A stretch of DNA of 64,000 nt from Bugula neritina (Eukaryota > Animalia > Bryozoa), in contig OZ037772.1 in NCBI GenBank assembly GCA_964035545.1, forward strand, positions 7,796,889 through 7,860,888. Reading direction: 5' to 3'. The notes beneath the pieces are model-generated. The model saw nothing but the letters and a program-made list of their open reading frames with translations. It was not told where the DNA came from and made no database searches. Below are positions 531 to 63,471 of the stretch, piece after piece. The translations under genes and the position numbers were made by a program. Positions within the stretch are counted from its first letter, which is position 1; every line of letters begins with the position of its first letter.

Positions 531-3500
531 GTGATGTTTCATTTCTACTGCCACCACCGTGCTCACGACCGTGTCTTTGCATCTGATTATCTATAAATAA
601 GTCATTATTTTTAGGCAATTGTATGCAATAGAAATATTTCCGTAAATCGTATGTTAAATATGCTTTGCGTTTCAGCCATATTATCTAAAATTTGTTTATA
701 TATACATACACACGGACATATATTGTGCGTGTGCGTGTGTGTGTGTGTGCGTGTGTGCGTGTGCGTGTGCGTGTGTGCGTGTGTGCGTGTGTGCGTGTGT
801 GCGTGTGTGCGTGTGTGCGCGTGTGCGCGTGTGCGCGTGTACGCGTGTGCGCGTGTGCGTGTGTGCGTGTGTGTGTGTGTTCAACTCACCCTCTTTTAAA
901 AAGTTCTTCCTTCCAAGATAAACTAATGCAACCAGTACTATCAGTCCAGCCACAGCTCCTCCTCCAATCCCAATATATTTGATTAAACTATTTGGAGCAG
1001 CTTGCTCCAATGCGCTCTGGGATATATTTTGCGATACATCTACAAGAAAAGCATCTATTCTATCTGAACCCATTTTGCTATATATGATCACACAAGCATT
1101 TACGATGCTTATTTTATGAATTTTGTCTGTAATGCCTAATTAAGCACAAACTGTCAATAATAATATTATTATGTACTATCTTTAAATAATTAGCAGTCAA
1201 AAGTACATTAGTCATTCAATAACATTTTTTCAAATTTTAATTACAATGTTTCTAAAGTTTAGTAAAATTATTTGATCAATAAAATTTCTAACAGCGGTAA
1301 ATACAATTTTACTGGTTTCAGTGACTGTGAAAGAGATGTTGAAATAGAGAGAGTTTGGTAGGGTTATATGATAGCCAACCACAATCGTACCCTGATTGGA
1401 GGAATTTCCAGTAATCCCAGTTTCTTTCGTCAAGGTTACTGGAGCATTGCTTGTACTTGAAGTTTTATCTGAACAAATCAACAGAAAATTGTCCATTGAC
1501 TAATTTAAAGTGCAGCTGGTGATGATAACAGATAAAAATTTTAAGCAATTTGTATTTGTTTTCACTTTTTAGCTTAATCTGTTTGCATACAAACATTTCC
1601 AGCCGTTGTGAATATAATTTCGGTTCACCATCACAAATGCATAGCAGGCCATGCTTGGTGAGTAAATAGGGCTGTGTTTTCAAGCAAAATCAAAAATTTT
1701 AGTAGAAAAAATAGCTACAACAAGAACTCACCAAAATATTCCAAGCTGTAAATTTCAGAGTCCCCTAAAATGTATAACGTTGACGATTCATCTAATAGAA
1801 AGACCTGGTTAGGAAATCGTATTTTACAGTCTTTGGTGTCTCCTTCCATAACAGACACCTCACCTGTCTGTGGTTGACAAATAGTTGAGACTTCTGAGGT
1901 CAAAAGGTCAACCACTCTTATCACATGATTTGAATTGTCAGCTAACAGTAAGTTGTTCTCATCAAAGAAATAAAGACCAAGTGGCTTTCTAACCAGTGCA
2001 TGTGCTACAGGGCCGTCATTATGCCCGGCCCCATTGTCTAAAGGAATGACTTCTTCAACTGAACTTTGCCAAGTGACAGGAACCCGAGTCATTCCATGGT
2101 TATGGGAAAAATAGACATATGTTTTTGTGGATTCAAACACAAATCTGTTTACATTAAGTCTCAAGGAAAACAGGGAAATCACTTGCCAGTCACTGTCTCC
2201 TTGAGTGAGACACTTAAAATGTTGGTCTAAGTTGTCAAAAAAATAAACCGTTGTGGCCTGAATTGACAACTTAGCCATACCGATTGGGTAACCAATTTTA
2301 GATGTTCCAAAGTCTTCACTTCTAGAACCACGATCTTCACAGGCTCCAGTCAAATGGTGTGTTTGATTATTCTGTCGATTGATGGAGCGAATGCAGCCAT
2401 TGGTATGGTCGGCCACCCAGATGTGTTCTGAACTCGTTGGATTAGTTACAATTCCTGTTAAACTTCCGAATCTTACTGATGACCCTACACCTTCTTGGTA
2501 ACCAATTTCAGAAGAGTCTCCAGCTATTAGATCAAGCTTGGTAAAGTCATGTGTCGTGTAGATGGCATACCCACCAACAAGCAAGTAATTCCCGGTAACA
2601 AAGTCGTCTTTAGCCATTAATTTAAATTTTATATTTTGTATTGATGTTGTCTCTGCAGATATCACTGTTTCAACTTGCTTAAATTTAAATCTGAAATGAT
2701 GACGAAAAACTACAATTACACCAATATACTTTACATGTATATTAGCTATTTATCATGGAAACCTGAATTAACTTCATGAAAACTTTTAATAACAGATACT
2801 CTGGTGTAAATATTTTGCCAACTAACAAGTCAATTTTGTTTAGACTTGTGTAGGCTAATAAATTTTCTTTGTCTGTCGGGGTCTGTAAAAAGCTTCAAAT
2901 TAAATTTAAATGTTATAATAGTATATAGCCATTTTGATCAAGAAAACAGTATTCAATTTTAATCACAGTGATGATTTGTTGATAAATTTGATTTACATAA
3001 AAGAAGGAGCCAAAAATACAATAACGCTTTATACTGACAAATGATAAAAGTGACAGTAGCAAAAAATTCTTACATTTTAATATGATTTTTTGGCAAGTAT
3101 TGCCTAGTTTGTTACCACCAAGTAGTTTTTATTCAAAAAATGGTTGTCAAATGACAAGAAAAAATTCATTTTACCTGTTTATTTCGTCTAGATGTTGCAC
3201 GACTCCATCAACTTTGTGAGTAAAATACTTCACCTGCAAAAAATCCGATCAAGCTTTGAATATGATGTCTTATACTTTATTAGGTACAGACTGTTTTCTC
3301 TGCTTTAATATTGCTATAATATAGTTATACCAACTAATGTAAATCTTTGTTTTTGACTTAAGAATACATTTTAGGCATTTTTCTAAGTTGCCTACATTTT
3401 TAACCCCTTTCATTTTTCAAAATATATTAAATGAAGGCTTCAATGACAAATTTTGTATAGTGCAACACATTTATTGTTTCAAATATATCACAAGTTTGAG

Positions 3501-3642
3501 TTATTTTGCAAAATTTCTGTTTTTTCAATTTATATATCTGTATTGCAATAAGTAATATATTAACGCTTATTGTTCTATATGTATAGTCAATAGTCTTACC
3601 TACATTGATAATAATCAGTGTCATATAAAGAGTGGCTTTCAT
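531..3642 (-). CDS. G1: type-I membrane protein with NHL-like beta-propeller ectodomain (3' end probably runs off the window)
   Basis: Predicted exons: 3604-3642 ([13 protein letters not shown]), 3175-3233 ([20 protein letters not shown]), 1732-2690 (propeller; ORF 1715-2665), 1391-1468 (S/T stalk), 890-1039 ([22 protein letters not shown] then GRK), 531-590. GT-AG sites and phases (0,2,1,1,1) are consistent. No stop found in the window. Confidence 0.8.
725..880. repeat. (GT/GCGT)n microsatellite
   Basis: Directly visible; source of the VC/HT junk ORFs. Confidence 0.95.
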
Positions 3643-4771: not shown

Positions 4772-11703
<6,932 letters not shown>

Positions 11704-12826: not shown

Positions 12827-18940
<6,114 letters not shown>

Positions 18941-19040
18941 GACCAAATTGGTTCGACATTTATTTGATAAAAAGTATTTCGTTGTTTCTAAAACTTTATA
19001 ACTAGCATCAAAAATGTTAATCATTCAAAGTATTTCACTA

Positions 19041-19473
<433 letters not shown>

Positions 19474-20634: not shown

Positions 20635-22866
20635 TTATTTTTTTTTATTTCCTGATCGATTCTTTTTCTTATTTTTGTGCGATTTTTTTTCTAAAATAGT
20701 AGATGGTTGCATATTATAAGTGCTACATATCAAGAGAAAAAAAATTATAGATAATATACAACAATTGATATATTGTTATACTTACGCAACAAACTACTTC
20801 TAGATGTACAAGCATACAATGCAAAATAATAATATACAGCCACCGATTTATATATCAGTGTTACTTTTCACACAATATTAGATTGTGAATGTACAAGAAA
20901 TATGGAAAGAAGACTTTCAGTTTTAAAAATATATGAGTGGAGTATAAACGTTATGACTCATATAGCTCGCTTAACTGCGTTTTCCCAGAAGGTTTACTTA
21001 CTTGGTTTAACCAACTCGTTTACAATTGCATCCAAATCACTCTTGTCCTTGTATGATTGAGGCCACACAGAGCTCGGGTCATCACCTACAAAATGTACAT
21101 ATATAGACGTTAGTAATAAAATTGTATATTATGGTATAAGATCTACGTTGACCATTATATTTTGTATGATTACAGCATGAAATGTATGGTATAGCTAAGC
21201 ATTTGTTACCAAATTAAAATCTATGATAGTGCGCTTATAAACTAAGCCAGTTTAAATGCTCACCAAAAGGAACTGTGACTGGCTTTACATGATCATTGAT
21301 GTTATGGGTAGGTGGAGACACAAGAACTTCGTCTATATAAGGAAATACATACATAGATTATTAAACTTAGTAAATTAACCATTTTTCTTAAAAATATGCA
21401 ACAGATTATAAATAGATTATTTAAAATAAGAAGTGGACCATTTTACTTTATGTATATCAACAAATTATGACTAGAAATTAAAGTTAAAGCAGGTAAAATA
21501 CCATTATTTTAACTTTATTTGTATACGCATAGTAGTTAAGGAATTATTCCAGGCTTAATACAAAAACTGCTGTATAAACTGAATTGTTGTAAAAACTCAC
21601 CATACAACATCGTCGCTGGTTCGCCATCAATGAAATCATTGGCGTGTTGAGAGACAGGAGGTGGGTCTACACAAATATATAAATGAATAATAAAATAATA
21701 AATGAATAAAGCTCAGAAACGTAACTAATGCCTATCCTTGTTTAGCTAGAAGAATTTTTTACAAAGTTATTTTTATAAGGCACAGAAGCAATTATTGCTA
21801 AATGCTTTTTCTAACATTGCTATGATGCCATTTACAAATAATTAATTTCATGACTTTGGCTTTATCCCTTAAAACATGGCTGCTCCCTGATAAATCAAAA
21901 TCTGAAAGCCATAACCTATTGTGAAATCAAAGACTTCTAAACCTCATCAATTATCAAGTGTCAATTTTAAAAAAGACTATAGCTGATTAAGAGTTCAACA
22001 AACCAAGTCCTACTATATTCAAACTCTGTTTCTTGCACTCACAAAACGTAAGATTTAACATTATGGGATCAATCGTTATTGGAGATTGTTATTATTTTGT
22101 TCTATGTCTAGTCTCTCTATTCTTCAACAATGTGCTAAGCTGTAGCTATGCAGTTTTTTTAAAAGTCGTTATTTATAATTACTAGAAGGAACCATCATGA
22201 GTGTTTACTCTTTTTCACAGCCTAATTCAACACAGGTAAATATTGCAAATAGCATGTGATTTCATTACAACTCTAATAATTTTTATAGTGATCAGTCATC
22301 CCAATATATCAGAAAATTTTATTAGTAAATTGTAGCATTAAGAGTTTTACAGATTCAATACTACTACTAGGAAAGATTTTTTTAGTCAGACTTGAAATTG
22401 CAGCTCAGCAATTTACTTTTTTCTAAGCCTAGGGCCACACGGTGCGTATTTTCGCATGGAAAATTGAAATCACAAGTAGCAAAGGTGTCCACTGTAGCGT
22501 CAGTGATGCGTGATAAACAAAGCTTTCATTTTTAAATCGCACTCGCTTTCAATAGAACGCAATTTACTGGAATGTAGCACTAAATTAAAGAAATTGGGCT
22601 CGCTGAATAGCTACCAGCCAATTAGGTGACGATGACAGAGACGATTCGCACTTGTCGCTCAACATTTTCAACGCAAGTGCGAACGTTTTCTCAACGCGCA
22701 CAGTGGACACCTTTCCTACTTGTGATTTCGATTTTCGCATGCGAAAATACGCACCGTGTGGCCCTAGGCTTAATAAACCTATTTTAAGAACTTACATAAA
22801 GGGTGTAGCTGTGTGTTAAACTCCATAACATAACTGGTGGCTGGAAGCATTGCAGGGCGAGCTAGA

Positions 22867-22936
<70 letters not shown>

Positions 22937-24044: not shown

Positions 24045-24075
<31 letters not shown>

Positions 24076-24184
24076 GTCTGTATGTCTGTCTACATGTTTG
24101 TCTGTCTGTCTGTCTCTGTCTGTCTGTTTCTGTCCGTCTGTCTCTGTCTGTATGTCTGTCTGCATGTCTGTCTACATGTCTGTT

Positions 24185-24217
<33 letters not shown>

Positions 24218-36347: not shown

Positions 36348-36699
<352 letters not shown>

Positions 36700-37217
36700 T
36701 GTCTGCCTGTATGTCTGTTTGTTTGTCTGTATGTCTGTCTGTTTGTATATATGTCTGTCTGTATATCTGTATGTCTATCTGTCTAAATGTATGTCTGTCT
36801 GTTTGTTTCCAAAACAGTTTATGTCTTAATTTGTTAAATTACTTTCTGATTTGTTACAATTTATTCACAATGAATACATGCAGATATATGTTTTGGAAAA
36901 CTTTTACTTCAATTAATACTGTAAAAAGGGCATTAAACATCACAACTTTTGTAAAGCAAAATAATATATCAATGATGTAAGCATTTAATTAACCTAACTT
37001 CATACAATCAAAGGTACTTTTTCAAACTTTTGCTATATTTATTTATAATTAAATTATTCATTTGCATAATTTTTTAGCAAGTTTAACAAGAAATTTTTGG
37101 CAGTGTTTATACCAAAAACTGTTATTGTAGAGTCTTTAAAATGCTTCAAATTGTGCTCAGGTGATGATGCATAAAAGATATCTGTTCAAACTGATAATAT
37201 TCCTGTGTTCAGCCAAT

Positions 37218-44208: not shown

Positions 44209-44265
44209 TTTATTAATTAAATAAAATGACCCATAATAAATTAACAGTCATCATTTTGTCCTTAC

Positions 44266-47200
44266 AAGTCTAGCATAGACTCCTGTGTCATCATATTTCA
44301 TCTGCCCTCTATTCATGGAGAAGTTTATATAATCTTGATCATTATTTTTAGAAACGTACTGCTGTCTCCCATGAGGCAAAGAGGTAGACTGAATACAAAA
44401 ATAGCTATTTCATTATTTCTATAAAACTTGCAAGATACGTACAGAATGAAAAGACTAAACAAACAGAATGAAATAGTTTAATGGGCTTGGTTAGAATTCA
44501 TGTGTAAAATGAGATTTTTCTTACAAGACTTGCATAAACCCCCGAGTTGTCAGCCGTCATTTGTTTTGAATTTACAGAAAATGTGGTATAATCTTGGTCA
44601 AATCTTTCTTTTTGTTGAGAGGGTGTCTTTGCCTTAAACGATAAACATAAAAATTAGAGTAAAACATTAATGCAAAACAACTAGAATTTAAATAAAACAA
44701 TTAGCATCTCAATACCAAATAGATTCTATTTTTTATCAAACTAGCTTGAACTGCTATAAGTTAGTATACTAAGGCATCATACTGATTATGGATAATTTCT
44801 GGTTGTCAAACTATAGGACAGTTATTACAGACTTAAAATTTCCGTTGCCAATTTGAGTAATTCAAGCGAATTGTAAATATACATATATGTTTTCCTCTAT
44901 AAGATTCTGACAAAGATTCAAATCATTCTTATAATATACGCTTGCAACTTTTTTATTTGCTGTTGAAATGTTTACCAACAAATATCATATATTTATAAAA
45001 GAATACTAAATTCTTTTAAAATTATATAATAAATAATATAACTCTTCTTTTTCGGATAAACTCTTTTTTTCTAAATAATACAAAAACTATATAAATGCAT
45101 TAATTTGATTGCAAGAATATAGCATATAGTGTGTAATGCCCTGACATTAATTTAGCTTATCACTGGCTGCATTAATTAGTGCAAAAAACTAGATTTGAAG
45201 GAATTTTTCAACACGTTATGTAGGATATTAATTGACTTGTTTATTGTTTGCAAAAGTACTTAGCTATTCCTTAATTAGGCCTTTGCTTTGCTTTGTTTTT
45301 CTGAGTTTCCACTAATATAATTTTAATGCATGCGCATGACTCTAAATTTAATCCAGTGTGACAAAATTGAATTTAATGCAGTATTTCTAAGTGAATATAA
45401 CATATTTGCTTAAAAGTTAAAGATTGTAATTTATAATACCGTTTTAGGGTATCTATAATTTAATCTTGTTTTTCTTATTCTATGTGATCATAGACTGACA
45501 AACCTAAACCTATATTGGAGAGCTGAGGTTACTCGGTGACGCCAATGGTGTAATTAGTTAGCGTAGCTGCTAGTAAGCTGCAGATACTGAGTTTGAATCT
45601 CAGTGAGAGCAAAACTCCCAAAAGTTATTATATTACCTTTAAAACCAGTATAATTTGTTTACCTATTATAGTTTGTTTGCTAGAACTTTATTAAATACCT
45701 AATTACTTAATTACTTTTAAAATTTTAAAAAATGCTTACTTTGTTTTTCGGAGAGTTCAAGTTCTTCTGTCTGCTGTGTTCTAAAAAAACAAAATAAATT
45801 AATTATCTAATTTTTTCCAAGATCAGTAATTTTTTTGTATATTTGTTAGTTAAGCTTTCAGCTGGAAAATATATATGAAGTTTGCTGATTGCAGTTAACT
45901 AAAAGTTGTGTGCCGATTTTTAGGTATTTTGCGAACTTTTTCTAAAAAAATTGTGGCACCAATAAATTGACAAAAGAATAAAAACTGTAAAACATATATC
46001 ATTAAATTGTAAAAACTTTGACGGAAAATACAAAACTACAATCAGAAGGTAACACTGTGACTGTGAAAAAGAAAAAAATCATTAGGTTATCTTATTAGTT
46101 CTTCAACTACACAACATGTAATGGTACATTCGGAGTAATCTTTTATCAGTTTAAAAGCTAATACTTGCAGTCGCTTAGAGCATGTTAATGATTGGCATGT
46201 GTTAGCAGCTACTAATATAACTAAAATCATTATAGAAGCAAATCTTACTGCAAAAAAAAATCATTTGAGTTTAGGCTGGTAAAAATAGGCCACAATAAAA
46301 ACCTTTTATTAGTATAAGGAAGCATATAAATTGTTATGATATTGAAAATGTATCCGTATGTGTTTATGTACACTCGTTTTGGTAGTGCCTTAATTGCTAC
46401 ACTACCAATATACTACAATGGAAATATAGAATAAAATTTTAGGTCAGAACGAAGCCTGTATTTTTATTCAGTGGTTCTTAGTGTATAATGAATACCTCAG
46501 TTTCACAATGATTTTACTGCACTGCAACCTTAAAATTATTGAATTCCATTTCGGTGCTTTTTGTGATGCGTTGAAAAACTGAAGTTTAAACTTTCTTTAA
46601 AATTTAATGTGTATATTTCTATATCCGTTAAGCTTATTCATGAAAAAATCTCATTAGATTAAAAAGGGTATGTATGACTATCAAATGGTCATTCTTAGTT
46701 TTATGCAGCTAAACAACTTACTTTGTCGTTCGTCTTTTATTGATGCTCCAGATTCCTGAAAAAATTAGCATTTTACAAAATTCAGTTTAAACAACTTTTT
46801 TTTATTTAGTAGTTATATATAAAAATGACAGCAAGTTACAATGTCAATATTTGTTTTGCTTTAATTAAAGTATTGCTTTTTTTAATTTAAGTATAAGTTT
46901 TATCAATATCGTTCTTTTTAATTTGATAATCGATTATGTAATTGGCAGCTAAATGTAAAATTTTCTTAGTAAAAGTACTAGTATTAGTAGGCCTAAATCA
47001 ATTATTGTATGACAAATTGCGCTTGTAATATACTATTTTTTTAAAGATTGCTATTGCCATTTGTTTTTATAAATGTAACACCGCAGCAGCAGTCAAAATT
47101 GAAACTATTTTGTTAAGAGGCTGCAGCCTGAATTCCTAGAAGTTATAGATCAGTTTCAGAAATAAAAACAGTCACATGTTAGGCCTAAAGTCTAACCATC

Positions 47201-50200
47201 AGTGACTTTAAGTGAAAATTGGATAAGAGTATAAAGTAAATTAAGAAAAATTGTTCAAATGGTCAATAACAACATTATACAAAAACATTCTTTTTTCTAT
47301 AATAATAATTGATTTACTACAAAATTAATTATAAAAATTGTACTTTTTTGGAAAAAATATTTTGGGTTAAAATTAATAAGAACATTTATTACTTTGCAAC
47401 TTCAAATACTCTTTTATAATGATGCAGGCATTTTTTTATATTTTTCATTAAACAATTAATATCTACAACATTGCAATTAAATTAATATAGTAACACTTAC
47501 TGGGGTACCAGCGCGCCACTCGACTGTCGCCATATCAGAGGGTTTCATTCTCTTGCCCATAGCTTGCACTTGTCGCTCTCCTACAGCAAATTTACAATAT
47601 TTCATATCTCAAATTGGTCAGGTTACCTAACTTTAGAAACACTATAATTATATATCTCTAGTTTTTTAGTCTTTTTCACAGTTTAGCTGGGATTGTATAT
47701 AGTTTCTTGAAAAAAACTGATGAAATATTGAGAAAAATGAGTGAAGAATTATTTTTCAATTTTGCCTAATTTCCTGCATATATTTCATCCTAACTTCTTA
47801 ACAAATTTGAGTGTGCGGAGCGTTGCGAACCAGCACACCCGAATTTACTATAAAATTGGAATAAAAGCTTTTAACAATCGAACATTAAAAAAACTGGTGT
47901 TGTTTTTTTTCAATTAATTGCTTCTAGCATGTATAAAAAACACAAAATAAAAAAAAATTAAGCGAAGGAAAAACGTGAGTACAAAAAGAAAAAAACAGAA
48001 GGATAATATTCAATAGCTTGTATTGATTAACTACATGATGCCTTCCCTGCGAGAACATTTAATGGGCGAGGGTTTTTAAAAACCCCATGAGAATTTTCTT
48101 GTTGGCGATAAACAATTATTAATAAATGCTGCTTTTTGTGCCTTACTAATCACCTTTATATTAAATAAAACCACTTACTAGATTTTTGTTAAGCCAGCGC
48201 TCTAACCTCTAGGCCATGGCTACTTTCTAATTAAAAATTCTCAAAATCAGATAAATAATTATGCAATAACAGTTTTTCTGTATCACAAACCTAACGGCTC
48301 TTAAGCTTATACATATTCAGTTGCCTATTACTAGCATTTAAATACAAACAGGTTTCAGTTTTACTACTTACTTTGAATTTTCTTTTGTCTCAGAAGTAAA
48401 AGTATTCCTGCCATCATGACTAACACAATTATAATGCTTGCTGCAATGATTCCATCATTATGGGTTTTATCAGGTGTTTCAGGTACCTCAACGCCGGTAG
48501 TTGTCGTTGCTGCTGCTACAGTGGTTGCTTTCCTAGTGTTAGTATGAACAGTAATAGTGGTAGTTGGTTTTGGAGTGGTTATCATTGATGAATCTGAAAA
48601 CAATAATATAATTTATGAGAATTTTATATTCCAAATATATACTCAAAAGTATAACATACACTAAAGTTCTTGCACAATGTGCGTGTCTGTGTGTTATGCT
48701 TGTGCACCTGAAAAAATTAGCGTAGCTACTTCTTGCCTTACTGTTTTTCATTATTCTGCCTAGCTATGTTTCTTCCTGATAGCAATTATACATGTATACA
48801 AAATTAAAGTTTTCACAGTCAAAATTTTGAAGTGTATTGTAAGTTAATTAATTCCATCTTTTGTTGAAAATTACACAGTTCAAGAACACCATAAAACAAT
48901 TGGTTTATATGAGAATGATGTTCTTTTGTATATACTACAAAAATAAAAGCTACAGCAACAAACTTTTTGTCTGAAAAACATCTTTTTTAACCAAAATTGG
49001 TGTGTAGCGGTAATAGTAAAAGCGATGTTCAGATTAAATAATTTAGACTCACCAGTATACTTCAGTTCATAGATTGTGTAATCACCAAGGATGAAAATTT
49101 TCCATGAATCTTCTAATTTGAAAAGATATCTTGGAGATTTGAATTTGCAAGTAGAAATTGAACCGGATTGGAATTCGACGTCACTTGTTTGAGGAATACA
49201 TATAGTTGAGACAGATGGGCTGGCTAAATCAACCAATCGTAAGACATGGTTCTTGTAATCAGCAAATAGAAATGTCTCGTTGTCCAGAAAGAATAAGCCA
49301 TTTGCCTCTTGTAGTTTTGCACTCCCTAGTGCACCATCGTTGTGTCCAGTACCAGAAATAACGTTCACAGCTGGAGTACTCCAAGTGGAAGATATGCTGA
49401 CAATACTTGTCTTAGTGCTGAAGTACATGAAGTCACCGCTGGGGTCAAAGTTCAGTCCGTAAATTTTCTGTCTTAGATAAAGCACAGTATTAATGTACCA
49501 AGTTAACCCAACTCTCTCAATACACCTGAGAGTTTCCACCACATTCTCATAAAAGTACACTTTCCCTTTCTCTGAAGGTGAGGCAGCCAGTTCAAATGGG
49601 TAGGCAACTTTTGCAAGGCTAAACTCTCCGTCTCTTACAGTTGCGTCATTGCACCCCCCTACTAGCTCGTTCGATATATGATTAGTTCGGTTAACGGTTC
49701 TAATACAGTTATTACCCAGATCGGCAATCCATATATGTCGATTATTGGTAGGGTTTGTAACTATTCCAGTGATATGTCCATACCTTGCATGAAGTTGCTT
49801 ACCTTCTCTGTAACCCTTGACCTTTTTATTTCCAGATACGTAATATATGCTCATAAAGTTACGAGTAGTATAAATACCGTATCCATATACTAACAAATAG
49901 TGTCCTTTGATGTAATCATCTCTTCCTACGTATCGAAAGGAGGGACCGCTCTCCGAAATTTTCGCAAACTGTTTCATTGTCTCGAATTTTTTGCTAAAAT
50001 TAATTACAACCAACTGAGCAAGAATACTAAGCTTGTCTAATTTTTTATACTATATAAAAATATAATTTCTAACAATGCTACCTAATTAACAGCTAATAAA
50101 AAAACTCACACAAGCTTATAGTAGCCATCCCTAAATCGGCTAAGGACTTGTTTAAATAAGGCACAGGAGCAATTATGACTGGATGCTTTTCCTAACATCA

Positions 50201-50755
50201 CCAATGGCCTTTGTTTGGGTTTGAACCCATGACCTTTGTGTTTACTAGTCAAACGCTCTACCCCTAAACCATGGCTGCTCTTTACCTAATTAACAGCTAA
50301 TACTTTCTATACATCATACTACTGTGCACATATGCTGAACGATTTATGTTTGTAGATTTACCTGTTGATTTGGTTTTTGTGAATAACACTTCCATAAGAC
50401 AAATTCCATTGCAGTTTTACCTAAAACATAGTTATTTTATGCTTTATGTCTAATCATTTGCCTAAAGATCAATTTAGAAGATGCTCCTGAGCATGCCCAA
50501 ACATATTTCCTGTTGGAGAGGTTGCGCAACTCGTTGCATCAGTGAGTTACGTTTTGTGTTTCATTGACTGACACAGGATATTATAGGCATACATAACAGT
50601 CATGTGATATGCTATAAATAAGATTTTAGGTGACTAAAAATGTTAGAATAGACATCTTTAAGCTTCAATACAAATATCCTCACAGCAAACTTATATAGGG
50701 CTTTTTGTATACTTACACACACGATGATCACTAGTGTATATTTTCCAAAATACAT
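44266..50755 (-). CDS. G8: NHL-like propeller receptor, TM, tail with duplicated tyrosine-motif exons (final exon uncertain)
   Basis: Exons 50717-50755 (MYFGKYTLVIIVC), 50362-50420, 49053-49993, 48372-48593 (Thr stalk + TM GIIAASIIIVLVMMAGILLLL-RQKK), 47501-47580, 46722-46755, 45740-45780, 44525-44632 (..DQDYTTF..GVYASL), 44266-44388 (..DQDYINF..GVYARL). Alternating phases 1/0 fit at every junction. Confidence 0.78.
50099..50282 (-). mobile_element. tRNA-derived SINE with a 20-bp target-site duplication
   Basis: Minus-strand head gagcagccatggtttaggggtagagcg...gggttcaaaccc (A and B boxes). tacctaattaacagctaata is repeated at 50079-50098 and 50283-50302. Confidence 0.85.
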
Positions 50756-52700
50756 TATAGCTACATTAACTGAAACTGCAACTTATTTAAAAGAAGTGAT
50801 TGCTAATAAATTTCGGGTAGTAATTAAAACATAAAGTTTTCAATCATGAAAATTTCAACTATGTAGAATATTTTCAACTCTAGAAATTAGCACAACGCAA
50901 TATTGTTATTATTTAGTTTCTGTATGTTTCAACTGATAGGATAAGCAGAATATGGAACATAACTTTATTCAGAGCTGTTATTCAAACTATTGAACTTTTT
51001 AGTTAATACTGGTTTTATGAGGTGGGTTTTTTAGATACTCATTTTAGCTTTTGCAAATAACAAAATATTTCAAATTGATTTAAAAATGTTTCATATTTTC
51101 AGAAGTTGAGTTGTATGTTTAGGCGTATGATAGAATGTAGGCTAATTAATTTTCTTCATCTTTTGATACAAAATTTTAATCAAATTTTTTTAAAATGTTT
51201 GTACCAGCCTGTTTGATTATTGATTTTTATATCAATTAACTTAGGCTAACTAGTAATTCAGCAATAGAGTTATCAATTAGCAGTTTTACAAAGAAAATAA
51301 TCGAGCACAGCCTTTGTATATGCATTAACTGATCAAAGTGATAATGTCAAGAAGAAAACAACCTAATAAGAATACTGTTGAAAAATTTAAACAATGAGTG
51401 AAAACAGGTTAGGCCTGGAAAAGAGATATGTCCTATATAGTGATCAACACAGCTAGAAATGTGTTTGAAAAGTTAACTGCATGAAACTAACAGGAGCCAA
51501 AGTTGAAAGGCAGAACAAGAAAGAACATAAAATTTTGATGTAGCAGGCAGCAACTATTTAGCACTAAAAAAACTGGATTTAAACTTCTGACACTTTATTA
51601 TCCTTATCAGACTTTTTCTTTGGGGTTTGGGTCTATTCTGTTGACATATCCAGCTATTGAAACATGACTTCTTTTCACCAATTTCCCTATTTCACATGTA
51701 TAATATGCGTTTACAAAGTCACTGTGCAGTATGGAAAACATCATATAATCCAAAAGCGACCAAATAGTTCCTATTATACAATTAAGTATAGAGTTTCGTC
51801 AGTTTTAAACTAAATTGCGATCTCTTTCATGCTAAGAAAGTGTAAAAATGTGTGTAATAGTAGTTTACCAAACTTCAAACGGGTGTAGAGTAATTAATTT
51901 TAAAAATAATTGTGGTTAGGTTACATGTTCAAATTTCATGGAAAAAAAAATATCAGTATATGTTTACATTATGTTTGCTTTTTGTGTGTAATAAACCTAA
52001 TTCTTCATTAATTTGTGCACTACACTGAGCAGCTTGGAGTTGCATCCAAATCAGTTATACCTATAACACGATTGTATTTCAAAGTTTATTAATTTGATTT
52101 TTTGTTTAGAAGTCATGCTTCCATTGTTGTTCAAATCTGAACCATGGTTTTTACGCCAAAAACGTTTTGCAGTTTTTTAAACATTGCGCAATTAGGCTAA
52201 TGCCTTTCTTAAGGTAGGAAAAAAAGCATTTGCAATAGTTATTTGAGGCCTGGAATTTGTAAATTTATCTGTAATGCAAGGTTATTTAAGCTGCCAGTAG
52301 ACATTTGACACTTATATATTGGGGACATATATTATATTCCAGAAAAGTGCATTTTGGTGAACAATATAAATTCACCTATACACATAGGTAGACGAGATGT
52401 TTAAGCTCAAATGAAATTAAAGTTATAAATATTTTATTTTGTTAGCTCTGTTTCAAAGTTGAGAAAATAAACATTATACAGATCAAATACTGATTTTAGA
52501 ATATGGCTTTCTCAATGATCATCTGTTTAGAATCCTTAGGTTAGATGTCACATAAATGAAATAAATCAAATAAGCATATCTTGTAGATTTTATAGACTTT
52601 GATGACAAGAAGTTGCCCATCGCTGGTTTGCTGAAGCCTCGGCTTTACCTCTCCGGTGTTCACAGGAAATGCATTATATGCCTTGATTGGGGTTTGAGTT

Positions 52701-55700
52701 TTAACGTGGGCTTTTTGCTTTCTCAGATACTGTTGAAGTTAACTAAAGAATACAAATGATCAAAATATACAACATTTACCATTTTCTTATATGTTGATCA
52801 TTTCTACGTATTGACTATTTTTAACCTAAATTTCATAAATATTTTTTTGCAAGCAGCTTGCAGTTTGTTGCAAGACCTTTTTGCAGCATCTATTGAACTT
52901 TTATTCAAATAGTTTTTTTGATTTCTTTTTCAATTTCGCTATAAGATTCTAATTTGCTTGCTTGTACTAAATAGATTGAAATAACATAGTTTATTACTGA
53001 TGCCTGCACTTTTTATATACACAAATATAAACCTGATTGCAATTCCAAAGTATTTGGTTGCATTATTGCAAAATGGTCATAGCGCCATCTTTAATTGTAG
53101 TTTTTTCTACCATAATATATTTAAATGCTGGCTAATAAAACGAAATGGTTCAATATTAGATTAACTCTAATTTGAGACAAGCTACGTGTTAGCTAATCTA
53201 CCACATTAACAACTATATACTTTTAAACACATCAGGTTTTCTTAATTAGTTTGTTTAAATACATCTCACAAAATAGCAATGAATTTAGGCTTCAAAATTT
53301 TTGCAAGAACTTACTGTCTTTGTAGTGCTCATTTTAATGACAGGCTTTTTCTTCACTTTTTTCCCAGGTGCTGGTGCTAAAACCAAAAGTTTTTTCATTA
53401 AAAACTTTGTGTTATATCAAATGTCTCCGTAGCTGTCAGTCAAATATATAAAAATCTTGCGGTAGGTCTGTTTGTAAATTTTGCGAAAACTATTCAGAGA
53501 ACTTAAGCAAAAAATTCCTAAAGCAGAGTTCTAAGAAAAAATATTTCTTAACTTTTTATTATTTAAGCCAAAGTTTTTTAATTAAAACACATTATTTATT
53601 AGGGAATAAACAATTGAAACAAGCTATTTTTCATTGTATAGGATTCAAACAATATAAATAATCAATTATAATTATTAGGTAAAATTATTATTTTGTAAGG
53701 AATTGTTCTTAAATTGAGTAGTTCTGATAATTTTCACTAAATAGAAAATTTGTTATGTAGCGCTCATATTTATTATTTTTACGTTGTTTACTGTGATACC
53801 AGTTATTTTCAGCATAAAAACGAGCTAAATATTTTAGTAGCAGTAAACTGATGATTGCAGTAGGTAAAAAACATTTTAAATTTTAAGTCCATTACACTCA
53901 CAATCAAGTGGAGATAAGTTTTTAGTGAAGCACACTGCGGAACAATTGTAACATGTTATAATATAAATGAAACAATATAGAAAGCAACAGTTGAACAACA
54001 AAAAGACATTTTTCATGTCTAAGACTAACAGAATAAACATTGAATAAATAAATATAAACATAATTTGGATATTTTTAAACAGGTAAAAAAATTCAGTCGA
54101 TGAGCATGCTTGATCTTTGTGTTTTATGATAAAATAACTGAGTTTAATATTATAGTAGTTAAACAATAACTCAATTACTATTGTCTGTTGATAATGATTA
54201 TGTATTAGTAGTAGTCAGGTTATTGTTTACTATACTCATGCAGTTATCTTATATCCTACAGTATAATAATCAGGTAACTCATCAATGAAACATTTTCACT
54301 TGATTCATGAATAAAGGTTAACAACATACTTGAAAAGCTTGGTCCACCCGATACCTGAAACAATAATATTTTGCTAATTAGGCCTCAACTAATATTGTGT
54401 GTATCCTAAAATTTGAGATACGTATTCATATCACATGTAATAAAATATAATATTAATGTCAATAACGCCCACATTTTCATAGTCACCACAGCCCTGTGAG
54501 AAAACCCCTGATGGAATTTTTTTTTGTTAAATCGAGCTAAGAACTTATTCAGATTAGACACAGGAGCAATTATGACTGAATGCTCTTTCTAACATCACCA
54601 ATAGTTTTTGTCAGGGCCTAAACCCATGCTTCGTGAAGTACTAGGCAAACGCTCTAACCACTCAAACAAGGGTGCTACTATATACTATTATCAGCAAAGT
54701 TGATGTTTTATTTTTTTATTCATGATTTCTTTCAGCATATCTTATTATTTGAGTATTCAAGCAGTACATTTTCTAATTTTTAGGATTTGTATAACGTAGT
54801 TGAAAGTTCTCCTGTGCATAATTAAACGTGCATGATTTGTTTTTTATCTGACAAAAAAACAATGCCAAGATAATGCTTTTGCAGCGAACACAAGGCTACT
54901 GAGCCACAGATGCATTAGAAATATAATTGCAATTATAATTATAACAATTATAACTACACAAAGCTCAAGTTATATATGCAAAGATGTTGAATATCTTATA
55001 GTACTATGATTTACTAAAAAAACAGTGTCGATCAAACACCTTTTTCTACAGCCTTAATAAACAAAATAATCATTGTTTGAAAATATATAGGCAATAATAA
55101 TTTCATCATGTTTCGAGCAAATTAACAAATTAAAACAATTTTACAGATTATGATACAATTAAAGTAATTCAAAGGCACATACACGGCTACTCACCTTGTT
55201 GTTGACTGCTCCCACCTGCTGCTCTTTTCCTAAAAAAAGTAAAAAGCTCAACAACACTACACAAAAATTAGCAAATGCATAAGTTTTTACATAAGTCAGT
55301 CAAAAATTCTAAAATAAATTTGTGTGAGTCGATAGCAATTATCTTTGTTAGAACTTTTAAACAAACCCAAAGGTTTTACTAGTGAGCAATTATGCACTCT
55401 TCCTAGCACCACCGGGTTTTACTGGGGGTGAAGACACTGAGTTAATGTTTGTTGAGGCACGAATTTAACTGCGAATCTGTGACATGACAGGTTGTCTTCG
55501 AAAACCTTATACAACTGAAATAGGATGGATATATTATTTCTTCACAAGGATTTATATACAGAATTGCCGTTCATTATTATTACTTACTTTTTTGTATCTT
55601 TTGTCTTACGAATAATAATATTCCGCCCGTCAGGATCAACACACTTATGATGACTGCTGCAACAACTCCACCGGTTTTCTTTTTTTTAGATGCTTCAGTG

Positions 55701-57718
55701 GTTGGCGGTGGTGAGGTGAGAGGAGGGTAATCTAAGCATTAAGTTCTTTGAAAGTAAACAGGAACAACATGATCTGAATATAACTAGTGTTTTACTAGAA
55801 AGTCTTAGTAATGGCTGTCATACTATAACTCTGTTCTCTGATACTCGTGGACTCACGCAAGTTTATAGTTGCTATCCCTGTGAGAGACCCCTGATAGAAA
55901 TGGCTTTTGTTAAAGCAGGCTAAGGACGTATTTAAATGAAGCACAGGAGCAATTATGACTGGATGCTCTTCCTAACACCACCAATAGCCTTTGTCTGGGC
56001 CCGAACCCATGATCTTGTGCTTACTAGGCAAACACTCTAATCCCTAGACCACGGTTGCTCCGTTATAATTAGTGTTTTACATTTATTGACAATAAAAATT
56101 TATTCAGTAAAAAACTTACTCAATAAAACTCATCCAAATTTCAACTTGAGGTCAAGTATACTTAAAACTTTAGTTATACTAAATAATTAAAAACTCAAAA
56201 CTCACCCGTATAACCAAGCGAATAAATTGAATGATCACCAATGATGTAAATTTTCGAAGCTTCTCTAGACGCAACAAAGTTTCTAGGGTGCTCTAGTTTG
56301 CATGTAGCAATCGAACCCCCAATAACACTGACATCGCCATTTTGGAGAAGGCATATAGATGATACAAAGGATTGGGCCAAATCTACGACCCGTAGCACAT
56401 GGTTTTTGTAATCTGTGAGTAGAATGGTTTGGTTATCTAGAAAGTGTAGGTATTTTGGTTTCCGAATTTTTGCACTGTCTAGTGCACCATCGTTGTGTCC
56501 AAAGCCAGAAATAATAATCTCAGGTGAGCTTGCTGTGGCAGAAGATACTCGAATTATACTTGAGTTGGTGGTGAAGTAAAGGTATGCACCAGTAGGGTCA
56601 AAGGTCATACCGAATAGCTCTTCGTTTAAATTAGCTATAGTTTGAATGAACCAGGTTGAGCCGACTAGAAGAAGGCATCTAAGCCGTCCATCGCTGCTTT
56701 CATAAAAGTAAATTTTTTTGCTCTCCGATGGTGATACAGCCATGCCAAATGGATACGCTACTTCCGCAGATGTAAAATCGCCATCTTGTATGCGTCGGAA
56801 TCCCCCACAAACTCCAGTTAGATCACTGGTTATGTTGCTTACGCGATCAAGAGTTCTGAAACAACTGTTATCCTGATCAGAGATCCATATATGTTTATCA
56901 TTTGCCGGGCTTGTAGCTATTCCATTTATATAGCCAAACCTTGACAGACTCTTTCCTCCGTTAACATATCCATCAAGGTTTGACAATCCTCCTATATAGT
57001 GTGGAGTCTTGAAGTCACTAGTAGTGTAAATACCGTATCCAAACACCACCAAGTAATTCCCTTTCACAAAGTCATCTGCCACTATGTATCGACATTCAGG
57101 CCCACCGCTGTTAGTCCGAAATAAAACTTTCATTTCTTCAAATTTAATGCTAAAAAATGAGCATTGATAAATCACTCTGAACTAGTTTGCAATTTTTTGG
57201 GATATATTAGCAGAAAGTTTAAAACAATTTGCATAAAAGCAGTTTATACTGTCCACATTTTATTGTACTCGTTCTATCAGTGTGAATTCATGCAGGTTGC
57301 TTACTGTGTACTGTACAGGCTTACCTATCTGTGTGTGTTTTGTACTCAATATCTCCATAAGTGACATGCCAGAGAAGTTTTCCCTGAAACATTTTATTTC
57401 AACAATTATCATGTTTTTGCTGTTTAAATTTTATGTTTTTGGTCTCTGTTTACTGCCAGACATTTTAATCGACTTGTTGCATCAGGGAATTATTTAAGAT
57501 GTATAAGAGCTTGAATGAAAGTGTTACTTTCATGCTAGGTATTGCATGCTCTGATGCAGATATTCTCTTGTTAGCCAAAAATTGACATTTATTGGTATAA
57601 GAGCTAAAATATTTGATATGCAGGCCCTATTAGCATATACACTACATCAATTTTGAAATAATATTGTTTGTATACTTACACATATGCAAATCACTAATAG
57701 ATAGAGTCGGAATTTCAT
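52701..57718 (-). CDS. G9: NHL-like propeller receptor, TM, tail truncated before the tyrosine motif
   Basis: Exons 57680-57718 (MKFRLYLLVICIC), 57325-57383, 56206-57149, 55588-55731 (TM), 55195-55229, 54330-54354, 53315-53376, 52701-52742 (LTSTVSEKAKSPR*). Homology to the G10 last exon continues in another frame. Confidence 0.75.
54475..54678 (-). mobile_element. SINE, same family
   Basis: Shares cacaggagcaattatgactg..ctaacatcaccaat..aacccatg..tactaggcaaacgctcta with 50099-50282. Confidence 0.8.
55404..55514 (-). mobile_element. Possible decayed Tc1/mariner transposase fragment
   Basis: Translation KVFEDNLSCHRFAVKFVPQQTLT resembles the mariner (A)KFVP/WVPxxL linker motif; short and unverified. 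Confidence 0.3.
55852..56061 (-). mobile_element. SINE, same family (most complete copy)
   Basis: Same core and tRNA-like head (ggagcaaccgtggtctagggattagagtg..gggttcgggccc). Confidence 0.82.
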
Positions 57719-58873: not shown

Positions 58874-61800
58874 TTATAGAAGACTGGCATAAACATCCGC
58901 TTCATCGACTTTCATTACTCCTGTAGTCACAGGAAATGAACTGTACACTTGCTCTTGAACTGGAGGGTTTGCATAATCATGCTCTACTTGCTCAGGCTGT
59001 GTTGAAGGTGTCTATAAAGAACAAAATTCCATCACCCCAAAGTTTTAAATACGTTCTGTTTCAAGCAAATCAAATTTGTTTAATTTATTCAGAAAATTGT
59101 ATCAGAAAAACATGTTTTTCATTTATTTTAAATCATTTCAATTCAGAATTTATTCTAATTTAATGGACAACAATTCAAATAAAAAAATTTAGTGTTTGTT
59201 GAAAAAAATATTTGATGAGCTTTAGGCCTATATTTTATTGCACTGAATTAACTGCTTTTCCATTCAATGAGTTTTATTTGACTTTGTAGTATATGCGCTT
59301 CTCTACAACTAACTATTAATTATTAAACTTATATTAGCTGGCAGCTACATGATCATTTTATAGAGTTGTGAATTTAAACTTTAATTTTTTTAAATAAATC
59401 TTTTTTATTTTGTTTATAGTAGCTATTATAACTATAATCAAATAATGTTATTTCAAGATTTCTGTGTGAAAAATGTGTAGTACACTCATTTATATTTTTA
59501 CTACTTATTTTGCTATTCATTTGCGGAATATAACATTCCAGCTGCTATAATTGGAGGTTTCACCAAAACTTTTAAACTGTAATATTATTAATTAAAAAAA
59601 CTTTAAATCTTTGATAATTCGCACTAAATACATAGATTGAAATGATTTGACTTTGATGAACTATTTATATACACATATATAGAGTTGATGTAGTTAGAGT
59701 ACCTAATTGTATTAATATATCAAGTATTATTATATAAATTGTAAGCTTCATCAGCAGTTAAAAATAAAATAGTTGAATCAAAAATTTAATCTAAGGGAAA
59801 TTAAACAATTGGATAGCAAGCTATACCAACTGTAGTAATTTGCCCAAAAACTAAGAAATAATGTTTAGCTAAAAGTTTTTTGTAGAAAATATCCGCAGTA
59901 TATCAAGTTGTATTAAGTATGGCAAAGTGTCTTAGCCTAAAACTTTTATATAAAAGCTTACTCTGTTTAAATTGCTCTGCCTTTTCTTCGATTTTTTGGG
60001 TTTCTTTTTTTCACCGTCTTGTTTCTTGCGTTCTAAAGAAAATGTTTTTAAAATGTTACAATATTTAAAAGTCAACTTGAAAAACCTTCCTGGCCTCTCT
60101 ACTACTCATTCAGTCTTTAAACTCCCTTGACCTCTCCATACTACTCCGGAATACGCTATTACTACACTTCACTAAAAGTTTAAATAGCTTGAGAAATGGT
60201 TTTTCCCATTAGGATTCATGCAAACCCGATACATCCTCTTTGAAAGCAGGAACACTAACCATTACGCTAATAATTGGCCACAGAGTAATAGCGACACTAG
60301 CATATGCTGATCAATTAAGCTTATTATCCAAATGTACTTGCTAGCTTATTATAAAGACAAAAAACATACCTGATTTTGGCCTGGCTACTTCAGCGCTTGT
60401 CTCGCTGTACCCCTAAAATATTCACATTTTTAAAATAAAGTTTTGTAATTGTTTTAAAAAACCTGGTTTTGTGCAACTCGAGTTGGTAAAGAAATTATAA
60501 CGTTTTGTTCATTTATTTACAATTGTTTGTTATACTCTTCAAACCATTTCCAAACTCATTCTTTAAATTTTATAATTCTTTATATAAAGTTTTTTGTAAA
60601 AATTGCACAGGACCGTACATTTAGAACATGTGGGTTTGAAAAGATTTGTAAATAAAATAATGTTATCTTTTACTAAGATAATTATTAGAAACTAGAAGAG
60701 CATTCAAAAAATATGCAAACATAGGTTTGTGGTATATTATATAATACTCTTATGGTTGACTATAAACATAGTTATTCAAATATTTTTTTTAAAGAAACAT
60801 AAAAGATAAAAATCTAGAGTTAATGGAAGCATAGCGATTGCATATTGTAAAATTTTTGACCAAATCAAAATTGCACACTGGTTCTGTTGCAGTTGAAATA
60901 ATAAAAAAAGCACGTACTATGGTGTCAGCTTGCACTACAGGAGGTTTTCGATGGTTCATTCTGTCTATCGTTGGCTCTACTGTTCTGATCTCTCCTAAAA
61001 GAGATAGTAATAATTTTAGTACCAATAATACTATAGTAAAATTCACAAATATTTATAGTTATTTTCTTGTGAGAGTTTTTATTAGAAATGTTTTTGTAAG
61101 GCATGCTGAGGATTTTTTCATATGAGGCACAGGAGAGAGTATGACTGAAAGCTTTGCCAATGGCTTTTGTTGAGATTTAAACTCGTGACTTAGTGTTTAA
61201 TTAACCATTGCTCTAACCCCTAGAATATGTTGATCCTTTTTCAAGGTTTTGTTATCAATCATTTCTCACGTTTTGAAAGGATTATATTTGAATAATCATC
61301 TCTGTGAGAACCCCTTCAAGATGTTTAGCAAAAGAACATTTGTTGATACATTGATGCCTTCTTAGTATCCCCAATGAGAAAAACTCTGCTAAAATGCTTG
61401 AAGTACCATTTTGTTTTCTATGCTACTCTTGCTCCTTAGCACAGCAACTAATAGTCCTCAAACCAGTGTTTTCAACGGTTGAAAATATATCATTGCGAAT
61501 TAAATTTTTGAGGATCCACGAAAAGCTGGTGTATGTCAAAATGTTGTACAAAACATTTGATTGTCGTTAAAATAGCATCTTTTTTTTCATATGCACGTAT
61601 TAACAAATTTGTCAAATAATTTCACTACTAACCTTGTTTTTCTTTTAGTACAAGAAATATTAAAACTGCAGCAACCAAACTCAGCAAAACAAGGATGATT
61701 GCAGCAAAAATTCTCCCAGCGTTGGTTTTACCAGAACTCCCAGAAGGTGTTGCGGTGGTTGTAGGTACTGCTACAACTAAAATAATAAACTTTGCTAAAT

Positions 61801-63471
61801 AGTATATTTATCTACTCAATAGAAAATGCAATGTTTAAAAACATAGTTTTTTTTCTCTAGTTATGGAAAGAACTTTTGATCTATACCACAAAAATACATG
61901 AACAAGCAAACATATTAAAACAGGGTTTATCAGGTCAAATTTCTGTCTGCAGTACAGTGCAACTTGTATAAGAATAAAAAATTTGAGATCAAAAACTTAC
62001 TAGAATAGTTGAGAGCATAAATCGTAGAGTCTCCTATTATGTAAAGTGTCGATGATTCTCTAGATATGACAAAGTTTCTAGGATAAGGCATTCTGCATGT
62101 ATTAATTGAACCATTTTGAAGCATACTACCATCAGTTTGCAAACGGCATACAGTTGACACAAAAGAGAGAGTCAAGTCTACAACTCTTAGCACATGGTTC
62201 TTGTAATCTGTGAGTAGAATCGTTTTGTGGTCTAAGAAGTGTAAATATTTTGGTTCCCGCATTTTCGCACTGCCTAATGCACCGTCATTGTGTCCGAAGC
62301 CAGAAATAAGAGTCTCGGGTGAGCTTTCCCAGTTGGAAGATACTCGCATAACACTGGAGTTAGTGGTAAAGTAAAGATATGCACCAGTAAGGTCAAATGT
62401 CAGACCAGATATATTTTTGTTAATTTGAGCTATAGTTTGGATGGACCAAGTTGAGCCAACTAGAAGAAGGCACCTAATTCGCCCATCGAGGCTTTCATGA
62501 AAGTAGATTTTTTTGCTCTCTGATGGTGATACAGCCATGCCAAATGGATACGCTACTTCCGCAGATGTAAAATCGCCATCCCGTATGCGTCGTATTTTAC
62601 CGCATGCTCCAGTAAGATCACTGGTAATATTGGTTAAGCGATCAAGAGTTCTGAAGCAACCATTATCCTCGTCAGAGATCCATATATGTCGATTACTACT
62701 CGGGCTCGTGGCTACTCCATTGATATAACCAAATCTTGACTGGCTCTTTCCACCATTAGCATGTCCTCCTATGTTTGACAATCCTCCTATATAGTGTGGG
62801 GTTATAAAGTCACTAGTTGTGTAAATACCGTATCCAAACACCACCAAGTAATTTCCTTTTATGAAATCATCTGCCACTATGTATCTACACTGAGGTTGAT
62901 TGATGTTTGTTGCAAACAAGTATTTCACTTTGTGAAACTTTATGCTACAAAAAAAGTGTTGAATTATGCAGCTTAAAAAACCTTGTCACTATGTTAAGTA
63001 TACATAAAATATCAACACACAGGACAGTTAAGGGCAACCTTTAGCTGCAGCTCCCATACTGAGGTTTGCATTGTAATCATATTCATATCATATATATAGC
63101 TTGCTGTGTACTTTGTTTATGTAGCACCCATAATGAAATGTTAATAGATGATGCAGCCATAAGTGAGGTTGCTGTTTACTGGTTGTAGTTAGATCGTAGG
63201 CTAAACACTTGTAGGTAGGCAACACACATGCTACTCACAGAGCAATATTATAAAAGAAGCTGAACTACATTTTGAAAGAAATTTCTGATATTTTTAGTAA
63301 GGGTGCCCTTAACTATTCTGAAAAGATTTATTTTTAGAAATTTGGCCTGAAAAAAATTTAGCTGTTACTAAAAGTTTACTATCTGCAAGTTGCTCATTGT
63401 GTATAAGTGTACCTGTTGATGTGATCTTTATACAAAGCCCCTCCATCTGTTGCATGCCAATACAGCTCTAG
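58874..63471 (-). CDS. G10: NHL-like propeller receptor, TM, tail with bi-tyrosine motif (signal exon not located)
   Basis: Exons 63413-63471, 62001-62944, 61633-61776 (TM IFAAIILVLLSLVAAVLIFLVL), 60918-60994, 60370-60412, 59962-60032 (Lys-rich), 58874-59011 (..HDYANP..QVYSSFPVTTGVMKVDEADVYASLL*). Exon 1 not identified; it may lie beyond 64000. Confidence 0.78.
61085..61236 (-). mobile_element. SINE, same family, degenerate
   Basis: gcacaggag..atgactg..ccaatggcttttg..ctctaacccctaga matches the family core. Confidence 0.65.

Follow-up and report, generated by a model that had tools for sequence, protein, structure and literature searches.

A large, slowly evolving family of NHL-propeller genes, probably encoding surface binding receptors, arrayed in tandem in a bugulid bryozoan

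The DNA examined here, which we call the window, is a 64,000-nucleotide stretch of a genome assembly deposited as Bugula neritina (GCA_964035545.1; 216 Mb in 321 contigs), taken from contig OZ037772.1 (C8:7796889-7860888). It is AT-rich (~30% GC), and its minus strand carries ten long paralogous open reading frames (ORFs) of ~315-400 residues each, numbered G1 to G10, that align over their full lengths at 38-75% identity. Each belongs to a gene with a common minus-strand plan: a signal exon, an exon of 59 or 62 nt, one long exon that encodes a beta-propeller, and exons for a stalk and a membrane anchor. An earlier note on this sequence had proposed ten co-oriented paralogues with one exon plan, and the shared donor, the 59/62 nt exon and the propeller exon of 941-959 nt bear this out. 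The genes and exons given below by window coordinates lie on the minus strand.

In all ten genes, the propeller exon ends at an identical phase-1 donor, which falls after the first base of a Gly or Ser codon (a G, or an A in G5 and G10) and is followed by GTRAG. The lengths of this exon are always 3n+2, consistent with entry in phase 2 and exit in phase 1. Exon 2 was located in all ten genes (59 nt, but 62 nt in G4) and encodes peptides that are related across genes (e.g., GKLLWHVTYGDIEYKTHTD); in G2 it has a GC donor in place of GT. Exon 1 of G1 to G9 is 39-45 nt long, begins with ATG and codes for a hydrophobic peptide, a candidate signal, whereas the signal exon of G10 was not found in the ~530 nt that remain up to the end of the window. 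Phases are compatible for the hydrophobic ATG exon (G1-G9) and for the transmembrane exon (G1-G4 and G8-G10), and their splice sites are conserved in contigs from a related species. These contigs, from metagenomes derived from B. neritina, are collinear with G5, G6 and G9, introns included, at ~70-88% identity. For G5 and G6 they span the first two exons, and for G9 the second exon together with the one for the stalk and transmembrane segment. Throughout these exons every AG/GT site is kept, as is the ATG where exon 1 is covered (G5 and G6); lengths are unchanged, the frames stay open and there are no indels, whereas the introns show 10-330 gap columns.

AlphaFold2, supplied with a 33-member alignment, returned a model of the ectodomain with a predicted local distance difference test score (pLDDT) of 94.5 and a predicted TM-score (pTM) of 0.90, and a model of the full exon (pLDDT 93.0, pTM 0.90) has 24 strands that make up six four-stranded blades, the N-terminal strand closing the last blade. 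On these models the ectodomain, the product of one exon, is a complete NHL beta-propeller with six blades. Structural comparison with VIA-align gave the highest scores to the NHL domains of SOQ1 (Z 30.9) and NHLRC2 (Z 29.1), followed by a teneurin-like protein (Z 27.9) and the teneurins (Z 25), with lower scores for TRIM71 (Z 24.4), the PAL domain (Z 21.4) and YWTD propellers (Z about 19-20). Foldseek and Atlas agree on NHL (Atlas NHL clusters at TM-scores of 0.79-0.83), and a family sequence profile matches NHLRC2 at 5e-23 and SOQ1 at about 3e-22. With Pfam NHL (PF01436), G1 alone passes the cut-off of 20 (26.2 bits); the other genes fall below it. The assignment of the ectodomain to the NHL propellers, already made in the earlier note, is upheld by the models (pLDDT 93-94) and by their likeness to solved NHL domains (Z 29-31).

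NHLRC2 and SOQ1 (PDB 6g7w, 7djj-7djm), which superpose at Z 29-31 and a root-mean-square deviation of 2.5-2.8 over about 291 residues, are also the best profile matches and have the repeat signature in common with the bryozoan proteins, at an identity of only about 14%. They are, however, conserved single-copy genes with a thioredoxin-like domain, whereas the bryozoan genes, more than 130 in number, encode a lone propeller behind a predicted signal peptide, with a mucin-like stalk and a putative anchor that is either transmembrane or merely hydrophobic. The motifs that had been read as a fixed scaffold (among them WIxDxxNxC, DYxNHVxR and GHNDG) are present, but there is nothing special about them: they are what the repeat signature of NHL proteins normally looks like (G..G..DG....A.F..P.G, then D..N..IR), i.e., determinants of the fold and no special site. 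The invariant and near-invariant columns are the Gly, Asp, Cys, Arg, Pro, Ala and Tyr of that signature, and an alignment of 32-33 members revealed no conserved His triad, metal-binding set or His/Tyr/Arg catalytic set. Four cysteines are conserved, as two pairs 17-18 residues apart with a spacing fit for two disulfides, which points to an extracellular fold.

Downstream of the propeller, the genes fall into three contiguous classes: G1-G4 with a putative transmembrane segment and tail, G5-G7 with a hydrophobic C-terminal end, and G8-G10 with a putative transmembrane segment and a tyrosine-bearing tail. These are the classes that had been described at the outset, and they stand, with a correction to the tyrosine detail in G8-G10, where G9 has one motif only and the exon in G8 is doubled. 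In the first class, G1 (531-3642) comprises exon 1 (3604-3642), exon 2 (3175-3233), the propeller exon (1732-2690), a stalk-like exon from 1468 whose donor is uncertain, a transmembrane exon (890-1039) and a further exon (531-590); its tail probably runs on past the start of the window. Common to G2, G3 and G4 are a Ser/Thr-rich stalk exon, a transmembrane exon and a polybasic last exon. In G2 (4775-11703), exon 1 lies at 11665-11703, exon 2 at about 11200-11258 and the propeller exon at 9527-10485, followed by the Ser/Thr stalk (7190-7327), the transmembrane exon (6774-6962), a Pro-rich exon (6338-6451), an exon at 5809-5892 and the polybasic last exon (4775-4821). G3 (12830-18940) consists of exon 1 (18899-18940), exon 2 (18727-18785), the propeller exon (17443-18383), stalk (15228-15359), transmembrane (14872-15051), Pro-rich (14484-14570) and polybasic last exons (12830-12876). 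G4 (20638-26192), with exon 1 at 26154-26192, exon 2 at 25902-25963 and the propeller exon at 24739-25679, has a mucin-like stalk (23556-23822; 64% Ser, Thr or Pro) and a transmembrane exon (23177-23359); no Pro-rich exon was seen in it, and different candidates for tail exons (21264-21332 and 21002-21085) precede the polybasic last exon (20638-20690).

The genes of the second class are short. G5 (29071-31183) and G6 (33271-35423) have four exons each, namely exon 1 (31139-31183 and 35379-35423, respectively), exon 2 (30781-30839 and 35005-35063), the propeller exon (29708-30654 and 33957-34897) and a last exon (29071-29234 and 33271-33428) that encodes a short Thr-rich stalk and a hydrophobic C-terminal end resembling, in a short form, a signal for glycosylphosphatidylinositol (GPI) anchoring. 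This last exon ends in ...SGSRFVLAASILFLHLTV in G6 and G7, and in ...FRVYILLVLLQFYS in G5. G7 (37221-39487; exon 1 39443-39487, exon 2 39054-39112, propeller exon 37943-38892, last exon 37221-37402) is a broken mosaic: its ORF at 37914-38912 is split by a single TAA (38538-38540) that substitutes for a Tyr codon, and the 3' third of its propeller exon is 94-98% identical to G6, the middle being diverged from both G5 and G6. The propeller ORFs of the other nine genes in the window are intact.

In the third class, G8 (44254-50755) has exon 1 at 50717-50755, exon 2 at 50362-50420, the propeller exon at 49053-49993, a stalk/transmembrane exon at 48372-48593 and two copies of a bi-tyrosine tail exon (44525-44632 and 44254-44388). 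G9 (52544-57718) has exon 1 at 57680-57718, exon 2 at 57325-57383, the propeller exon at 56206-57149, a stalk/transmembrane exon at 55588-55731 and a candidate last exon from 52729, which retains the first tyrosine motif only (AYNAFPV). G10 (58877-63471) comprises exon 2 (63413-63471), the propeller exon (62001-62944), a stalk/transmembrane exon (61633-61776) and a last exon (58877-59011) bearing VYSSF-x14-VYASLL. The tyrosine module can be written roughly as PVY(A/S)xFPV-x10-(V/M/F)YAxL; its form in G10, Yxx(F)-x14-(V)YAxL, is present twice in G8 by exon duplication, and because both copies of the exon are open and phase-compatible, one transcript could hold two modules. In G8-G10 a transmembrane exon with a phase-1 end would have to join a motif exon that begins in phase 0, a mismatch implying that at least one intermediate cytoplasmic exon is absent from the models; a tblastn comparison among the G8, G9 and G10 tail regions found no such shared exons. 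The same module recurs in G11 (which, like G14, sits just outside the window) and in plus-strand genes at C8:7.78 Mb. Since propeller exons sampled from that flank share only ~25-31% identity with G5, retention of the module despite the divergence of the propellers argues for functional constraint on it. A genome-wide search with the 45-residue tail exon returned only itself and G11, although such a search is insensitive for short peptides.

The motifs, (D/G)(V/M/F)YA(S/T/R)L and (V/D)Yxx(F), differ from the immunoreceptor tyrosine-based inhibitory motif (ITIM; [SIVL]xYxx[ILV]) because position -2 is D or G, and their spacing of 14 residues differs from the 6-12 of the corresponding activation motif (ITAM). 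No charged residues occur in the transmembrane segments of G1-G4 or G8-G10.

Several other features lie within or between the genes. Related ORFs of 249 and 238 residues occupy an intron of G2 (7759-8508, plus strand) and an intron of G3 (15727-16443, minus strand); both contain a Cys-rich CNCR...CPL.G.C block and a YxG.SE..F..R..NH block, Pfam gave no match, and they are probably transposable element remains. TA/CA microsatellites (9306-9520, 10599-10970 and 699-830) occur in introns of G1-G3 and, in G2, right behind the donor of the propeller exon, so that raw ORFs run on as (IY)n or (HT)n. A 101-nt inverted repeat (18688-18788 and 19221-19321; arms 84% complementary) has one arm over exon 2 of G3 and the other upstream of its exon 1, amid TA repeats. 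Between G6 and G7 a long 12-nt tandem repeat (36341-36980) has three frames open as (CLPA)n. An Rfam scan of the window returned no match.

The locus is assigned to the animal, since it lies on a contig of 13 Mb and its introns are of the usual GT-AG kind. The window covers about one-sixth of a ~390-kb array (C8:7.58-7.97 Mb, its sequence analysed as alternate 10-kb pieces) with ~59 copies of the propeller exon, and six further copies lie at C8:8.71-8.73 Mb. Genome-wide, a first look yielded 222 candidates, and all 133 of the places that were scored against the family profile matched it, so the family has at least 133 members; 132 of these 133 propeller exons are without a stop codon. More divergent arrays of single-exon NHL propellers occur at C2:24.0-33.3 Mb and C7:13.4-14.7 Mb.

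Only one named animal protein was matched by the family profile: 'hypothetical protein EB796_008239 [Bugula neritina]', which groups with the copies at C2:24.67-24.85 Mb. The closest database proteins are short ORFs of JGI metagenomes; AY690838, which prefixes the names of their scaffolds, is the accession under which the mitochondrial genome of Bugula neritina is deposited (PMC2678162). Because EB796_008239 shares no more than 83% identity with any sequence of this genome, and the metagenome contigs are ~70-88% identical to its G5, G6 and G9, the organism that supplied the window is, to judge from these sequences, a related bugulid and not the same species as that of the published B. neritina sequences. 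One metagenome protein (P0170, 451 aa), encoded by an unbroken ORF, combines a signal peptide and a propeller of the family type with ~110 additional C-terminal residues and has no transmembrane segment; Pfam gave no match, and it may be a secreted relative. Searches of the literature on Bugula or bryozoan NHL proteins turned up nothing relevant, and searches of the wider literature on expanded NHL receptors of invertebrates turned up no such receptors. The family, so far seen in bugulid bryozoans only, thus appears to be undescribed and no name was found for it, in line with what the earlier note had supposed.

The paralogues are old: the number of synonymous substitutions per site (dS) ranges from 0.3 to >1 among them (0.3-0.6 for the closest pairs), and the terminal branches are long in a codon tree built from 14 intact genes. 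Pairwise Nei-Gojobori ratios of non-synonymous to synonymous substitution (dN/dS, or omega) are 0.16-0.41 for the propeller exons, and 0.56 for the pair with the broken G7. Codon site models, fitted to the 14 intact genes with our own implementation (which reproduces the IQ-TREE likelihood for M0), give a gene-wide omega of 0.29 under M0. The comparison of M1a with M2a is not significant (twice the log-likelihood difference, 2dlnL, 4.97); that of M7 with M8 is significant (19.05), and we discount it because the comparison of M8a with M8 is only marginal. A structural partition of the pairwise dN/dS contains no class above 1. As to broken copies, pseudogenisation and mosaicism, also claimed at first sight, are real in G7, with its TAA and mosaic exon; G7 is the only copy demonstrably broken, and 132 of 133 copies are intact.

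The pattern between species is similar. Five B. neritina-derived sequences pair one-to-one with G5, G6, G9, G11 and G14, at 81-86% amino-acid identity, dS of 0.32-0.51 and omega of 0.14-0.30, and the replacements that separate the partners are scattered over strands and over both faces of the propeller. With this one-to-one pairing, the near absence of broken copies and the non-significant M2a, neither birth-and-death turnover nor positive selection is borne out. The earlier note had itself set uniform purifying selection and one-to-one orthology to a known conserved family against its proposal: the first two are largely what we find, but the family concerned is not a known one.

Because the paralogues are ancient, nearly all intact, conserved between species and under purifying selection, we hold it probable that the family is a lineage-specific, germline-encoded and fixed repertoire of surface binding receptors with stable, differing specificities. 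The array does not have the look of a self/non-self recognition system that diversifies rapidly or is hyperpolymorphic. Under this model each gene would specify a cell-surface glycoprotein composed of a signal peptide, one propeller, a Ser/Thr-rich stalk and one of three membrane ends. The loop surfaces of the propeller would bind an extracellular ligand, candidates for which are microbial, substrate or cell-surface cues. On the cytoplasmic side, the tyrosine module might be read by phosphotyrosine readers of the SH2 or PTB type or by endocytic adaptors, and the Pro-rich and polybasic tails of G2-G4 might engage SH3 proteins or acidic lipids; the tail-less class (G5-G7) may supply a lipid-anchored or decoy form. 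Of this picture, the data establish the fold, exon plan, family size and selection regime; location at the surface, binding of a ligand, signalling and GPI anchoring are inferred.

Several observations weigh against this fixed-repertoire model. The exon models, including the joining of propeller to tail, rest on the logic of the sequence and on conservation across species, and they do not define the cytoplasmic exons that should lie between the transmembrane and motif exons of G8-G10. The GPI-like tails are short, with ~18 residues past the putative omega site and a spacer that is nearly absent, and N-glycosylation sequons are not enriched in the propeller (27 observed vs 26.4 expected). In addition, there is marginal evidence of some diversifying selection on one face of the propeller: the comparison of M8a with M8 gives a 2dlnL of 3.3 (p about 0.03), M8 places 11% of sites at an omega of 1.31, and 11 of the 13 sites with a posterior >0.8 fall in D-A or B-C loops, which lie by convention on one face. 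This loop class is also the most numerous one, and loops were assigned to the 'top' or 'bottom' face from the order of DSSP strands, not from coordinates.

The main alternatives to a fixed repertoire of binding receptors are roles in immune pattern recognition and in teneurin-like cell recognition. According to the first, which we consider rather unlikely, the genes encode paired activating and inhibitory innate immune receptors built on an NHL propeller, in which the tyrosine tails signal and the tail-less forms are decoys or pair with adaptors. Such an arrangement would account for the tandem, diverged ectodomains with three tail classes, the conserved bi-tyrosine module, the very large lineage-specific expansion and the marginal class of sites with omega >1 concentrated in the loops of one face. 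It sits poorly, however, with purifying selection overall and an M2a that does not significantly improve on M1a, with one-to-one partners across species at low omega whose replacements are not focused on one face, and with duplicates that are old and include almost no pseudogenes; moreover, the tyrosine motifs fit neither ITIM nor ITAM, and there is no charged transmembrane residue for the recruitment of an adaptor. Hydractinia Alr, KIR, LILR and Siglec, to which the array had been likened, offer an analogy only. They are single-pass surface proteins, as the bryozoan ones are predicted to be, in tandem arrays with related ectodomains and varied tails, Tyr motifs and tail-less forms included, but they are built on Ig-type folds, show rapid birth and death or high polymorphism, and use ITIM, ITAM or charged transmembrane segments, whereas the bryozoan family has an NHL fold, purifying selection and one-to-one orthology, without the canonical motifs. 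With an omega of 0.29, one-to-one partners and old, intact copies that lack ITIM or charged transmembrane residues, the analogy to paired receptors of the KIR, LILR or Alr type is not supported.

The second alternative, to which we attach the same low probability, is that these proteins act like teneurins in cell-cell or cell-matrix recognition, through homophilic or heterophilic binding, during the shaping of colonies and zooids, the wiring of neurons or the settlement of larvae. Teneurins carry an extracellular NHL propeller as part of a cell-surface recognition protein, as the bryozoan proteins would do on this view, and teneurin and teneurin-like propellers are among both the nearest folds (Z 25-28) and the profile matches; stable one-to-one orthology and purifying selection are what one would expect of a developmental recognition code; and the Pro-rich and polybasic tails of G2-G4 bring to mind the teneurin intracellular domain, which we take to bear polyproline and nuclear localisation signals. 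Nevertheless, teneurins are type II giants, present in few copies, with EGF, YD-shell and Tox-GHH parts that are absent from the bryozoan proteins; the latter are putative type I proteins of roughly 450-600 residues, and more than 130 paralogues far exceed the known adhesion codes of this kind.

Roles in allorecognition or enzymatic catalysis are unlikely. That the genes determine the fusion or rejection of colonies, a reading with very little in its favour, is an idea suggested by bryozoans being colonial, by a literature search that found no bryozoan allorecognition genes, and by the family being a cluster of surface proteins; and in a single DNA run we detected two haplotypes that differ at many sites (176 variant places in 5991 nt). 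However, the differences listed for the propeller exons of G5 and G6 are, in what is a very small sample, mainly synonymous (13 of 19, the other 6 being non-synonymous), the partner genes are well conserved across species, and no one or two hyperpolymorphic loci are singled out. Intron 3 of G5 (29361-29656) is represented in the DNA run by two contigs of equal depth, one identical to the window and the other with 25 substitutions and 3 gaps in 293 nt, i.e., a very divergent second haplotype.

An equally slim chance attaches to the view that these are membrane-tethered propeller enzymes, either PAL-like lyases or lactonases of the SMP-30 type: the propellers of both are structural neighbours (Z 21-23), and the PAL domain of PAM, a membrane-tethered, luminal NHL-type propeller, is a luminal or extracellular six-bladed propeller of a type I membrane protein (Z 21.4), but both rank well below NHLRC2, SOQ1 and teneurin and are not among the sequence-profile matches, the conserved columns are those of the NHL signature with no His triad or metal-binding set, the catalytic His, Tyr and Arg of PAL are not conserved, and more than 130 diverged copies would be unusual for an enzyme.

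Returning to the repertoire of binding receptors, a bolder version of it is possible, and we offer it tentatively: the more than 130 NHL-propeller members would constitute a recognition-receptor superfamily that senses microbes, symbionts or conspecific tissue, that uses a new bi-tyrosine module (PVYxxFPV-x10-xYAxL), and whose diversification is concentrated in long D-A loops on one face of the propeller.

To our knowledge, there is almost no molecular understanding of how bryozoans recognise microbes, symbionts (such as the producer of bryostatin), substrates or other colonies, and we know of no case in which the NHL propeller is the base of an expanded repertoire of animal surface receptors. 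Lineage-specific receptor expansions in marine invertebrates include those of the TLR, SRCR, C1qDC and FREP families, and these resemble the present family in scale and tandem organisation but are built on other folds; in size, the family rivals the expansions of TLR and SRCR. Because its genes evolve slowly and stably, caution is called for before they are labelled as immune or allorecognition genes. What the array supplies is a set of concrete candidates, together with a conserved cytoplasmic motif, with which recognition in bryozoans may be studied.

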